The notes under the pieces are model-generated. The model ran no database searches, was not told the origin of the DNA, and saw only the letters and a list, made by a program, of their open reading frames with translations. The position numbers and the translations under genes were made by a program. A stretch of 64,000 bases of DNA from Lepidodermella squamata (taxonomy: Eukaryota > Animalia > Gastrotricha), in assembly GCA_047495785.1 (NCBI GenBank), contig JBLDXI010000017.1, positions 1,674,001 to 1,738,000 of the forward strand, read 5' to 3'. Shown piece after piece: positions 30,016-35,149 of this stretch (position 1 is its first letter; every line of letters begins with the position of its first letter).

Positions 30016-31355
30016 TCAATTTGAAAAGATGATAGCGTAAGTTATAAATGTAGCCAATAAAATTAGCGTCACAGCAACGGCGAAAACGCAGATATCAATG
30101 ACACGGATCATTTGCATTGAAACGCCCCAACCCCAGCGAAATAACATAACTTCTTCCTTGAAATAAGGCATCAGGCAAATGCAACTAGCGACAAGCACAT
30201 AAACAGTCACAGCGGCTCCAATCACGGTCATGATAGAAAAGTAGCAAACCAGTGCAGTAGTTTCGGATGATTTAGGGAAGCTGGAGTAAAATCCAACTTG
30301 GAAAACAACGCTTGACAACACCGTCGTTATTGCATACTCGGCTCTTGTTGCATTTCTAGGTGGCATGAGAAGCCCAGCCAATTGTAGGATCAGCAGCAGA
30401 AGTATCGGTAGAAAAATCGCGGCGCCATAAAAACGGGAGTTTCTTCTCAACCGGAAGCTGAAAACCACGCTGCTGAAACCTGATCGACTTGACCTAAGGA
30501 CCTTCGAATCACTTTCCAACAAAGTCCATGCTGCCGAGTCTCTAATGAAGGAAACTTCGTCCACGTCGAGGATGACGGCTTCGGTGATGGCTACATATTC
30601 AGGTAGATCCACAGAAGTTCTGAAATAGAGACATTTCTCTCAAAGGTGAATGCTCGAGTTCAACTTACATTTCAACAGAGCAAATTTGAACGTCGTTTGG
30701 AAATTTGGCATAAGACAGTGGGCAGAACGAATCGAATCTACCCGCAGAGCTCCAATAGGCGTAACCATTTCCTCGAACTTCGATGTCTTGCCCGAGTCTA
30801 AAAATCGGCAAGCTTTGAAAACTTGGATTTCAGGGATTTTATGAAAAACCTTTCCGCGAAGTCTTGATCATCCAAGCTGTTGCTATGTCGAATAGTTGGA
30901 TGCCATAAGGTTCTCTTCCGAAATCGGCAAAAAGACATTTGCTTTGCCGCTGAAGAAATGTTGGCAACAGTGGACGTATCCCATACTGCGCATGGCGGCA
31001 TTCTCCAAGCAAAGGCAATCTGAGCCTCAACTGAAAACCTGAGAATTAGAGAATTTCAAGTAGAGGAAACTTGGTAACATTTCGCATACCGCTGCTCAGG
31101 ATCATCTATTCCAAGAAATCGAGTAGCAACGAATGCAATTGCTAGCTGGACTGCTTCTGTTTGATTTTCGACAGGTCTTGCTCTTATACTTCTGACGTAA
31201 GGGCAAGTGGAAGCCAACCAGTTGCATAATTCATCCTCTGGTGGGATCCACCCGCTTTTAATCGGCGTCGCAGTGGACTGTGGATCACCCGACGATTTCG
31301 CGTGAGCCACCGTACTTAACGATGCGAGTAGAATGCAACTTAAATACGAGGTCAT
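30016..31355 (-). CDS. Divergent Cys-loop ligand-gated ion channel subunit with a very short M3-M4 loop
   Basis: Signal peptide, RARPVEN, LWHPTI, Cys-loop CPLSYAKFPNDVQIC, FRLRR before M1, four TM segments. Confidence 0.85.
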
Positions 31356-31691
31356 GTTTTATATGTCATGTCCCATATTGCATCTTCAGCTGCTATGCAG
31401 GACATCGTTTAGAGAAGGGGCCTACAGTCAATTATACAAATGCCATGGCCTAGATTGTTTGCTCAGCATGATAAATCAATACGGAAATTATGTACCTGGG
31501 CGATTTCTACAATGTGAGAGTTTTGCACTTGGCATCATTTTCCCTTTCAACCGTTTCTGATGAATCATAAACCTCGCAGTTCTTGTAAATAATTTGAAGC
31601 TTGAAATCAATGTCATCTTCAACTTTCTTTATTTTGAGTAAATTCGAGGTGAAAAATCTAAACGTATGAGATGGAAATGGGTGGCCTCAGA

Positions 31692-32566
31692 CTAGCGAAT
31701 CGGCAGTAACCAACTTCGACACATCGGGCAAGTTGCTTGCTATAGAAGGAAAGGCGATATAGCATACAGGGAGCCTCAAGAGAAACTTTCTTACCTGTTG
31801 AAGCCAGCGTACAAGGCAGCCTCTGTGGAAGTAATGCCCGCATGAAATGCGACCGATTGAATGCTCATCATCCACAGGGTGATCTTCGAATTCTTCCAGA
31901 CAAATCGAGCACGTCCGTAAATTCATGGTGTCTTCATCATCGATTTCAGAAGGCAAATCTTCAAAGGGCATTTCTGTCACTAAAACGTCAATTTCCTGCT
32001 CATTCGCCGGAGGAAATTCATGCTCGATTCCCGCTTGATCAAAGGCTTGTGCTTGTTCTATCATTACATCCCGTCTTGCGTTTAGCTCCAGACTTCCAAG
32101 GTATACCTTGTGAAAATAAGTGAGTAAAGTTATCAAACCGAAATCAAACCAAATTTACCCAATATTTCCATCCTGCATAAAAAATTGCCGGGCCAATAAT
32201 GAAAGACGCAAGAATTGCGATCACGAACCGTTGCTCCTCAGCTCGGCATTTGTCGTAATGAAAACGTTGATATTCATCGGATAGAAAATCGTACGCTCGC
32301 TGAACATCGCTGAAGTCAGCCGCACTCATCCTTTCGTCATTTCGGCGATCAGGATGACGAAGTTTAACTTTGGATCTATACGCAGCTGTTATCTCCCGCC
32401 AAGTCGCGTCCGGGGAGATGCTCAGAAGTGAATAAGGATCCTTGACCAAACCACCGCATTTGAAAATCGACAAAGTGTTCGGCAAAGAAATGTAGTTAGT
32501 TGTCAAGCAGGCTTCAATTAGCGAGTGACATAGTGAGCTTAAAACAATAACAATAAAACGAACCAT
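31692..32566 (-). CDS. J-domain (HPD) + TM + RING-H2 protein, putative membrane E3 ligase
   Basis: DPYSLLSI...AYRSKVKLRHPDRR...FSDVQRAYDFLSDEYQRFHYD; TM; phase-0 intron 32158-32107; CSIC...CGHYFHRGC...QATCPMCR. Confidence 0.85.
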
Positions 32567-32684
32567 CCACACCTAGATAACATAAAATGGATTAAGTTGC
32601 GAATATTCAGAAAAAATGAAGGTTTATTTTGAGAGGAGATGACATTGGAAGGAGAATCGACTGGTTCAGATTCCAGATCCCATA

Positions 32685-33217
32685 TTATACCATAGAAGCA
32701 TGGTTCACCATCGCAAACACAGCTACATCTTTTTCGACGTTGTTAGCAGGCTGAATCGGGTAAACGATTCCACTTTTCGCGCGGTGCTCAGCTTCTTCAG
32801 CGCCGAGATTGTTCTAGGAATCCAAATGAAATTTGAAGATTAAAGAAATTTAAGCATTTTAAGTATCTAAGGATATACCCAAGTCTTCCAGCCGTATACC
32901 ATGAGTGGAGGCCCCAATATGGCGGTTACTACTATGAATAGCAAATAAATTTCTTGCTCCTGCCTGCACTGTTGAACTGAAAGCGAGTCGTGTTCAGCGA
33001 TTACGTTTGAATTCTTCGCATCGGTGGACTTTTCCTCGTGAAGCTTATCATGGGAAAGATGTGGGTGAAGTCGGTTGGCTAAAGCTTCATGGTGGCCGTG
33101 AAGGACTTCACGGAAGTGTTTCTTCCCACAGTTATAATAGGACAGGATGCAACAAACAATGGCTAACGAGACGAAACCAGAGTAGCAAATTAATGCCAGG
33201 CGAGAGACCCTCAGCAT
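32685..33217 (-). CDS. Two-TM protein with a His-rich loop; RING-less paralog of the downstream J-RING gene
   Basis: CRQEQEIYLLFIVVTAILGPPLMVYGWKTW aligns with CRAEEQRFVIAILASFIIGPAIFYAGWKYW, with an intron at the same position. Confidence 0.65.
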
Positions 33218-33933
33218 TGCGACAACGTTAGTGCTAGCCAAATTCAAATTATTGAAAATAATTACACTTCACATAGAGGCTTAGTATGAAAATGAAACTA
33301 CATTTTGTATTTAATGCCTGTGGATCACGCATATAATTTATTCCACACAAGGAATATCCAGATAAACACACGAGCCTCTAATATAAAAAGAGTTTTACTA
33401 TAAATTTTCTGAATGAAGAGCACGACTTGTAGTAGTTTCAGGTTTCAGTGCGGATGACTATTTCGAATGGAAAGCTTACTCGTGTTTTTACATAGCCAAT
33501 ACTAGGTTGTTTGCTTTGAAACTTGCACACCTAAGCTCAATGCTGTTTTCTTATCGATGACCAGCTGTTGTCAGCATTCATAAATACTAGAAATATTTAC
33601 TCTCGATTCTCTGGCGTAACTTGCCAAATTAAAAATTTAGCCATGCTACGCGGATTTTTATGAATTAAATCAGCTTTTCCAGTGACTTTTTAGAAGTTGC
33701 ATAGTATATTTGTCTTGTAAGAATGCATGATAAACCCAATTTTTTCTATCTTTGTGGGCAAATAAACACAGAGCGGTTGAAACATGGAAAATTGCGATAA
33801 AGCAGAGTTAACCGCTTTCTTATCTGTGCGGGATAATGAACTTGCATCTTGGAGCGTGGCGACGCTTCTTACTCATTCATCAACTCTGCTGTTGTTTCAT
33901 TTTCGACCCCCATCGAATATCATAACTTCTGCG

Positions 33934-35149
33934 ATGGAGCTTCGCGAATATATATTCACGGCAATCACCGGTTTCTTGGTCAGTGGATTCTGTAAGTTGA
34001 AGTCGACAAATTATGAACTGGACAATTTGATGAAACTTTGACCTCATTAGACATCATTGCTTGTGAAATCAATTACATGATTGATATCACACCGATGACG
34101 AGAGGATTCGATTCCGCAGATTCATCGATTGCTTACTCTAAAAAGGGCGATACAGTCGGCGATTGGGACATGGTAGGAGCATGCATGGGCGCTGCTGTTG
34201 GGCTGGTAATTTTGAATTTTATCCCAAAAATAACCAGAAATTTTTCGGGTTCACTAAAGATTTTATTCACGGAAATTCCTTACTGGTATTTACGGAGGAA
34301 ATCTCTGTACAAGAGTTGGAAACTGGTGGCCTATTACTGCTGTAGTGACCTGATCGTAATTTACTTCATAGGACTTGGTATGCCTAAAAATCTCAAACAC
34401 AAACTGTGAATATTTCTCAATGTAAAGGCGTGACTGTTTCCTGTACCAATTTGCTGAAGTACATCATTGCAAGACCCAGGCCATATTTTCTGGACTCGTG
34501 CAAGCCTAATTACACTGCTATAGGATGCGACGAAGCTAAATGCGTGCGATACCCATTCTGCCCCCATTGCGGCTTGATAGACTTCGAAAAGCTCGGAAAC
34601 ATTTGCACGGGAAAAACATCATTAAGCGATAACATCTGGTAAGATTATCATGGCTTCAATCCCTGTACCTTACTGCTCATTTCTTTCTAGGTTTTCCTTC
34701 CCTAGTCTTCATGCCTCCCACACAACCTATGCGATGTCGTTCTGCTTTCTGTTCATTCAATTTCGGATTTTGAAAGCAAAGGCTGTTCACAAATTTTACA
34801 ACCCAATAATTTCGATTTTCCAATACGCGGCAATCGGATTCGCCTTGTTTACTTGTTCGACTCGTGTAGCTGATAACCGTCACCATTGGGACGACGTCAT
34901 CATTGGGATGTTGCTAGGCTTCGCAGTAGCGTGTTGGCAGGTTAGATATTCATTATTCTACGAAATTGTTTGCAATCAAATACTGTAAACACACAGACCC
35001 ATTCATTCGTGCGCATCATCAAAACAAGAACAACTGAGGAGGTGGTTCCGGTAAATGCCCCTCTTGATGATTCAGCTGCTAGAGAGGCAGCTTCGTTGGC
35101 ACTTATACCGTCAACTCAGTTCTTTGAGATGAAACCTCACAATGGATAG
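33934..35149 (+). CDS. PAP2 / lipid phosphate phosphatase family protein
   Basis: C1 KYIIARPRP, C2 SFPSLH, C3 STRVADNRHHWDDV; multiple TM segments. Confidence 0.88.

Follow-up and report, generated by a model that had tools for sequence, protein, structure and literature searches.

A 64,000-nucleotide stretch of DNA from the gastrotrich Lepidodermella squamata (assembly GCA_047495785.1, contig JBLDXI010000017.1, positions 1,674,001 to 1,738,000, forward strand), called the window in the following, carries on its minus strand a spliced gene, here gene A, that combines a J-domain, a transmembrane (TM) helix and a RING-H2 finger. We read its product as a small type-I-like, single-pass membrane E3 ubiquitin ligase that has its J-domain in the lumen and its RING in the cytosol, restricted to one lineage, and give this reading a probability of about one half. 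It is carried by the transcripts, by the domains of gene A, by an ortholog in a related species and by the comparison of two haplotypes; a tandem paralog, gene B, lies directly upstream.

Gene Structure and Transcripts

The introns of the source organism, a eukaryote, are short (50-80 nt), and the coding span of gene A is built as follows.

31692..32566, minus strand: gene A, entire coding region; 255 codons and a stop in 3 exons, from translations, Pfam and splice joints
32159..32566, minus strand: gene A exon 1; 136 aa with the hydrophobic N-terminus, the J-domain, a juxtamembrane Cys-Arg, the TM helix and GWKYW
32107..32158, minus strand: gene A intron 1; 52 nt, GT..AG, phase 0 after GWKYW; the X1 contig skips the 52 letters
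31795..32106, minus strand: gene A exon 2; 104 aa with a post-TM stretch of basic character, then an acidic linker and the first six RING-H2 ligands, the RING starting from 31911
31740..31794, minus strand: gene A intron 2; 55 nt, splitting the RING ahead of its final CxxC; the X3 contig skips the 55 letters
31692..31739, minus strand: gene A exon 3; 15 aa plus stop, with the final RING Cys pair C-P-M-C and a short tail; X3 joint
31628..31633, minus strand: AATAAA downstream of the gene A stop, read from the sequence

Contigs from three public runs (X1, X2 and X3) were aligned to positions 30500-34500 of the window. X1 and X3 are derived from RNA, as their contigs are spliced and bear poly(A), and X2 is a DNA run whose 5-kb contig retains the introns. 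The X1 contig joins 32298-32156 to 32103-31979 (joint 32103|32156, equal to 32106|32159 after moving the cut by +3) with flanks of 125 and 143 letters, and the X3 contig joins 31907-31795 to 31739-31684 (joint 31739|31795). All splice joints of gene A and gene B are GT..AG on the minus strand. Each exon of gene A is an uninterrupted frame, and the chain from the J-domain over the TM helix and the linker to the RING is complete. Since the joint in X1 splices the J/TM exon to the RING exon, both sit in one RNA, and gene A is expressed. A preliminary description of this region, made from the letters alone, had predicted one spliced gene for both domains with a junction at 32158/32107; the intron lies exactly there and is seen spliced in the X1 contig, and the same joint answers the objection that the J-domain and the RING might belong to separate transcripts.

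Domains and Motifs of Gene A

Domain calls were made at the Pfam gathering cut-offs (27.8 bits for DnaJ, PF00226, and 27.3 bits for zf-RING_2). Sequence searches, folding and Pfam were run exon by exon, the joined coding sequence being used solely for codon numbering and hydropathy. The exon 1 features are these:

32501..32566, minus strand: signal-peptide-like or signal-anchor segment, residues 1-22; Kyte-Doolittle windows 1-23 score >1.7
32456..32458, minus strand: Cys37, an invariant column of alignment A1 (gene A, gene B and the ortholog); may form a disulfide with Cys107
32252..32440, minus strand: J-domain, residues 43-105; PF00226, 59.8 bits, E=2.8e-16, model positions 1-63, which is the full length
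32348..32356, minus strand: HPD motif, H71 P72 D73, read directly
32243..32248, minus strand: Cys107-Arg108, an invariant juxtamembrane pair, from alignment A1 and a motif scan
32168..32230, minus strand: TM helix, residues ~113-133, with a conserved Gly-Pro; hydropathy peak of 2.19 at 114-132, helix in the AlphaFold2 (AF2) model

Hydropathy of the joined sequence gives an N-terminal hydrophobic segment (1-23) and one internal TM segment (111-134). By inspection, the N-terminus consists of a short n-region with an Arg, a hydrophobic core of 10-12 residues and small residues around ...IEA, and cleavage after ...SLIEA is possible. The J-domain is canonical, with a basic helix II, the HPD, and the F..V..AY..LSD and YD motifs; J-domains in the PDB match it at E values down to 1.3e-8, with DNAJC16 and DNAJC10 among many matches of similar score. 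In the AF2 model of exon 1 (predicted local distance difference test, pLDDT, of 70.5), J helices are found at residues 44-47, 56-70 and 82-96, and helix IV is continuous with the TM helix (98-135).

Even without the last CxxC, exon 2 reaches 32.9 bits for zf-RING_2 against the cut-off of 27.3. Its Pfam matches are RING families only, with no SANT/Myb among them, and Pfam on gene A gave no PA match at E up to 1. Across exons 2 and 3 the pattern reads C-x2-C-x19-C-x-H-x2-H-x2-C-x10-C-x2-C, which provides all eight C3H2C3 ligands; the hydrophobic positions that contact the E2, as is typical for RING-H2 ligases with activity, are present by inspection (Ile/Leu after the first Cys pair, a Trp in the helix and a Pro after Cys7). 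The N-terminal hydrophobic segment, the J-domain with its HPD, the TM helix and the complete RING-H2 of the preliminary description are all borne out, at the same positions, by Pfam, hydropathy and the splice joints.

An Ortholog in a Related Species

An exhaustive phmmer search with exon 1 of gene A against 1.84 billion representative proteins, a set that lacks the L. squamata protein itself, returned 8614 J-domain matches, the best 150 of which could be viewed. Among these 150, the only one whose alignment runs past the TM helix and up to the exon end (residues 28-136, including WKFW) is P0013, a protein of 111 aa. It is encoded on scaffold L014, where the exon ends in ...WKFW|GT and is followed by a 78-nt intron at a position identical to that in gene A. 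The exon after this intron encodes a basic stretch like that of gene A and a linker, followed by an undivided, complete RING-H2 (zf-RING_2, 57.2 bits; tblastn E=5e-11). L015, a scaffold from another sample, bears the same J-TM-RING gene; L014 and L015 are ENA metagenome scaffolds of 17 kb and 27 kb (ERZ23486787 and ERZ27333047). All RING ligands are kept in gene A and in the ortholog. The ortholog RING matches those of Praja1, RNF38, RLIM, RNF126 and RNF13 at E values of ~1e-12 to 1e-11 (RNF13, E=1.3e-11), and in the same search the RINGs of HRD1/synoviolin and gp78 are detectable matches too.

The genes next to the ortholog (Na/Ca exchanger, Fringe) find their best matches on the contig of gene A (C17), the top matches being 50-74% identical, and we therefore take the animal behind the metagenome scaffolds to be a related species. 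The ortholog itself is only ~33-35% identical to gene A, which marks the J-TM-RING family as fast-evolving. Both scaffolds are eukaryotic and carry a sulfotransferase, the J-TM-RING gene, two Fringe genes and CCDC61, genes that a prokaryote-style caller had split at their introns.

Haplotypes and Selection

Compared with the X2 haplotype, the window shows 13 single-nucleotide polymorphisms (SNPs) in the 768 coding bases of gene A. At the codon level these amount to eight synonymous changes and four replacements, three of the latter conservative; the replacements are D87E, E110D, T180S and a two-base change in codon 23, read as Leu. Intron 1 shows 5 SNPs and 1 indel in its 52 nt. With eight synonymous against four replacement codons and a ratio of nonsynonymous to synonymous change (pN/pS) of roughly 0.16 on a rough site count, the comparison points to purifying selection on gene A.

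In the 5-kb contig of X2, all 23 differences from the window fall within 31689-32615 and none within 32616-34500, and at 30500-30779 X2, which carries two haplotypes, shows two coexisting alleles with 0 and 21 differences. This pattern looks like block heterozygosity or a mosaic contig.

The Paralog and the Junction between the Two Genes

Gene B lies upstream of gene A, head to tail and likewise on the minus strand, with 118 bp between its end and the gene A ATG.

32685..33217, minus strand: gene B; 2 exons, 155 aa; exon 1 33217-32879 (113 aa), exon 2 32813-32685 (42 aa plus stop)
32814..32878, minus strand: gene B intron; 65 nt, position and phase as in gene A intron 1; joint 32813|32879 in X1 and X3
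32888..32950, minus strand: gene B TM helix, residues ~90-110; hydropathy peak of 2.15
32572..32628, minus strand: B-to-A junction; AATAAA at 32628-32623, poly(A) addition at ~32606, acceptor-like AG at 32574-32573, gene A ATG 6 nt further on

The gene B product consists of a hydrophobic N-terminus, a His-rich luminal segment, Cys-Arg, the TM helix, GWKTW and a short tail. In pairwise BLASTP, it matches gene A at E=2e-11 over exon 1 and at E=1e-4 over exon 2 (post-TM stretch), and the similarity is located in the membrane core; its intron follows GWKxW in the phase of gene A intron 1. Invariant in alignment A1 are a Cys-Gly ahead of the luminal domain, R-H-P, Cys-Arg, the Gly-Pro of the TM helix and W-K-x-W. 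Pfam finds neither a DnaJ nor a RING match in gene B, and in the BLASTP alignment with gene A the HPD motif is interrupted (HP-HLSH-D). We also considered the luminal segment as a degenerate J-domain; the segment alone gives no BLASTP alignment to the J-domain of gene A and no Pfam match, which leaves this candidate unsupported. As judged from its sequence, gene B is a tandem paralog that retains the membrane core, without a detectable J-domain and without a RING. A RING-less paralog about 120 bp upstream with the same CR-TM-GP-GWK block and intron had been described beforehand, and BLASTP, the 118-bp gap and the joint 32813|32879 agree with it; the statement that the place of the J-domain is taken by a His-rich loop is fair as well.

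The AF2 model of gene B is of low confidence (pLDDT 61, two long helices), and co-folding of residues 36-136 of A with residues 28-113 of B scored 0.02, which counts neither for nor against binding. Gene B is a possible modulator of gene A. As for the earlier suggestion of a partner or decoy, nothing stands behind it except adjacency and a probable shared operon.

The gene B stop lies at 32687-32685 and the gene A ATG at 32566. At 32606, an X1 contig terminates in 19 T (plus strand), the poly(A) tail of a minus-strand RNA, and ~33 bases past this gene B poly(A) site an acceptor-like ...TTATCTAG ends at 32573. B and A thus look like a two-gene spliced-leader operon with B upstream, a putative assignment with an acceptor at the sequence level only; in one operon they would be co-expressed. 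A read-through fusion from the donor of B exon 1 to the acceptor at 32573 would be in frame, yet no such joint is found among the contig joints. Another X1 contig stops at 32719, inside the last exon of gene B, and runs on into 21 A (plus strand); an antisense transcript may end here, or the run may be an artefact.

Search for Further Relatives

Word-index protein searches with the RING-exon open reading frame (ORF) of gene A (region 11-114) and with exon 1 gave no matches, and a profile word search with alignment A1 returned P0013 only. Scanning the JGI metagenomes with pattern A5 yielded 182 pattern matches and no relatives among them, and the ESM Atlas returned generic DnaJ clusters and generic RING clusters only. 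In the L. squamata genome, exon 1 of gene A matches generic J-domains only (<=44% identity), exon 2 matches one unrelated RING and no further family member, and exon 1 of gene B matches itself only. None of the 150 best J-domain matches (of 8614) is combined with any RING family; searches by similarity to gene A would miss unrelated J+RING fusions, and distant orthologs may lie beyond these 150. No J+RING fusion is named in the literature searched, nor in the available part of a large J-protein survey (PMC10410713). As far as these searches reach, the J-TM-RING architecture is not a described widespread family. The preliminary description had not recognised the architecture, and our searches, with one related species matched at the protein level, are in keeping with this. 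Gene A would accordingly appear, from sequence comparison, to be a new, lineage-restricted combination of known domains, known from two related species.

Proposed Topology and Mechanism

The two hydrophobic segments would put the J-domain on one side of the membrane and the RING on the other. Because a RING depends on E2 enzymes of the cytosol and on zinc-binding cysteines in the reduced state, a luminal J-domain and a cytosolic RING would be the only usable orientation. The only J-side cysteines conserved in A, B and the ortholog are Cys37 and Cys107, which flank the domain; this suggests a Cys37-Cys107 disulfide, and an oxidising luminal side fits such a sole conserved pair around the J-domain. 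The residues following the TM helix in the ortholog are strongly basic (K, K, R, R, R), which fits the cytosolic side. In the model, the base of the J-domain would sit at the membrane with the HPD loop pointing away, the known J-domain fold being used to orient the loop. The opposite faces proposed in the preliminary description agree with hydropathy, and its coupling of luminal sensing and BiP to ubiquitination is something that we still infer.

The compartment with a luminal Hsp70 is the endoplasmic reticulum (ER), and RINGs of the Praja/RNF38/RLIM/RNF126/RNF13 subtype include many proven ligases. The N-terminal hydrophobic segment would take the gene A protein into the secretory pathway, most likely to the ER. 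There, the luminal J-domain, pinned near the membrane by a helix IV that continues into the single TM helix and probably clamped by the Cys37-Cys107 disulfide, would engage the ER Hsp70 (BiP) and trigger ATP hydrolysis beside the ligase. The C-terminal RING-H2 would face the cytosol and recruit the E2; clients bound to BiP would be brought to it, and their exposed parts would be ubiquitinated. A protein with one TM helix cannot itself form a retrotranslocation channel, and without a channel its clients would most plausibly be membrane proteins, or proteins under extraction by other machinery. Topology, ER location, BiP as a partner, E3 activity and substrates are all points that we infer.

Gene A may encode a one-polypeptide chaperone-to-ubiquitin relay across the ER membrane, independent of HRD1, in which the state of the BiP interaction would control or direct the RING-H2 and the paralog, probably co-transcribed, would act as a regulator; we offer this as a tentative proposal. 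In ER quality control, the relay from the luminal chaperones, ERdj proteins and BiP, to the RING ligase in the cytosol normally takes several proteins. If the proposal holds, gene A would represent a minimal coupling of luminal folding status to cytosolic ubiquitination. A J-TM-RING protein would then be a simple test object for how much of the relay is needed, could show whether BiP engagement steers ubiquitination across a membrane, and could serve as a template for engineered degraders against luminal or membrane clients. Should the J-domain be inactive, gene A reduces to another lineage-specific membrane RING ligase.

Several points weigh against the reading as a J-domain-bearing membrane ligase. 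The ortholog carries HPE where gene A has HPD, and its J score is weaker (33.5 bits), so that canonical Hsp70 activation may not be the conserved function of the family; as far as can be read from ortholog and J-less paralog, the family seems to conserve the membrane core and not a canonical Hsp70-activating J-domain. The ~33% identity between ortholog and gene A, compared with 50-74% in the best-matching neighbours, fits a dispensable or a conflict-driven gene no less than one for quality control. A single TM helix offers luminal substrates no path to the RING, and the location and orientation of the protein rest on reasoning. At the transcript level, no single contig spans the whole gene A mRNA, and in X1 record 2 the 30 letters upstream of 32555 mismatch the window. 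This record aligns downstream from 32555, a position not preceded by an AG; its mismatched letters reflect variation between strains close to the start codon, or else a leader whose joining is not visible.

Some of these points recur in a reading that we regard as rather unlikely, namely a membrane RING-H2 ligase in which the J-like domain has lost its role as an Hsp70 co-chaperone. Its luminal domain would be structural or ligand-binding, like the PA domain of RNF13/GRAIL-type ligases, and the protein may act on cargo that has nothing to do with folding, be it in the Golgi, in endosomes or on the cell surface. The HPE and the weak J score of the ortholog speak for it, as do the paralog that keeps the TM core without a detectable J-domain, the fast divergence and a RING of the RNF13/RNF38/Praja type; membrane-bound ligases with such RINGs are mostly post-ER. 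However, the J-domain of gene A itself is fully canonical over the full Pfam model (59.8 bits), the haplotype replacements are few and conservative, and the exchange of Asp for Glu in the HPD is a conservative change. By analogy with the repression of IRE1 by ERdj4 and BiP, the protein could also be a sensor of BiP availability, kept monomeric or inactive by free BiP through the J-domain until BiP is titrated by unfolded proteins, whereupon it would dimerise and switch on its RING; gene B, lacking both J-domain and RING, would be a damper competing for the membrane core. A J-domain right at the membrane with its helix IV running on into the TM helix (AF2), a conserved TM/GP/GWKxW core common to B, the probable co-transcription of B and A, and a single TM helix that argues against a channel would all suit such a sensor. 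The idea is nevertheless pure analogy, the co-fold score gives no verdict, and no B-like gene was found near the ortholog on L014 or L015 in the few kb that were covered on either side; we consider it quite unlikely.

Very unlikely, in our view, is that gene A is a young and nearly neutral product of exon shuffling, which may lack any specific selected function linking the J-domain with the RING. Such an origin would accord with a family found in two related species only and with the phase-0 intron between the J/TM module and the RING module. Yet the whole architecture, with the site of the intron, has been retained in a species in which the best-matching neighbours share only 50-74% identity, the RING ligands are all kept in both copies, the ratio of synonymous to replacement changes speaks for purifying selection, and the gene is expressed.

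Neighbouring Genes

On the plus strand, the neighbour at 33990-34990 has introns confirmed by the joints 33991|34051, 34204|34259 and 34376|34427, and a PAP2 lipid-phosphatase domain at 34650-34985 (E=1.3e-15). Downstream of gene A on the minus strand, an ORF of 99 aa (31056-31355) with a signal-like start has no Pfam match, and neither has a multi-hydrophobic ORF of 198 aa at 30016-30612. Further away on the same contig lies a very large tandem array of Na/Ca-exchanger-like genes (C17:429687-804198); 81 exon-sized matching pieces were found, nearly all on C17 at 0.43-0.80 Mb.

Comparison with Known Systems

The PA-TM-RING proteins (RNF13, RNF128/GRAIL, RNF130/Goliath, RNF167/Godzilla and plant RMR) share with gene A the predicted order of signal peptide, luminal domain, single TM helix and cytosolic RING-H2, and they share the RING subtype (RNF13 RING against the ortholog, E=1.3e-11). 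The luminal domain of gene A is, in contrast, a J-domain and not a PA domain, the protein is much smaller with 255 aa, and no sequence relationship to the PA-TM-RING family was detected outside the RING. A J-domain in the lumen beside a TM helix, with a cytosolic effector, is likewise found in ERdj1/DNAJC1, Sec63/ERdj2, DNAJC25/ERdj7 and DNAJC16/ERdj8. The logic of such ERdj1-type proteins is that a BiP-related signal is sent across the membrane; they use SANT/ribosome-binding, Brl or thioredoxin modules, whereas gene A has a RING-H2, and its J-domain is no closer to ERdj-type J-domains than to generic DnaJ.

In the luminal branch of ER-associated degradation (ERAD-L), HRD1-SEL1L with ERdj4/ERdj5 and BiP follows the same idea, a luminal J-protein and BiP passing clients to a membrane RING-H2 ligase. 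There, separate proteins are at work and the multi-pass ligase is the retrotranslocation path, whereas gene A is one polypeptide with one internal TM segment. Chaperone-coupled ubiquitination, with a module that binds Hsp70 attached to an E3 in cis or within a complex, is also known from CHIP/STUB1 (TPR and U-box) and from DNAJB12/14 with RMA1/RNF5. CHIP/STUB1 binds the Hsp70 tail via TPR repeats and not via a J-domain, DNAJB12 and its E3 are separate proteins, and all of these act on the cytosolic face. In its proposed topology gene A resembles the PA-TM-RING ligases and ERdj1, yet it is a member of neither, and it lacks a defining feature of each of three families, namely the PA domain of the PA-TM-RING ligases, the SANT domains of ERdj1 and the multi-pass domain of the HRD1 type. 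We therefore file it as a new combination of known parts.

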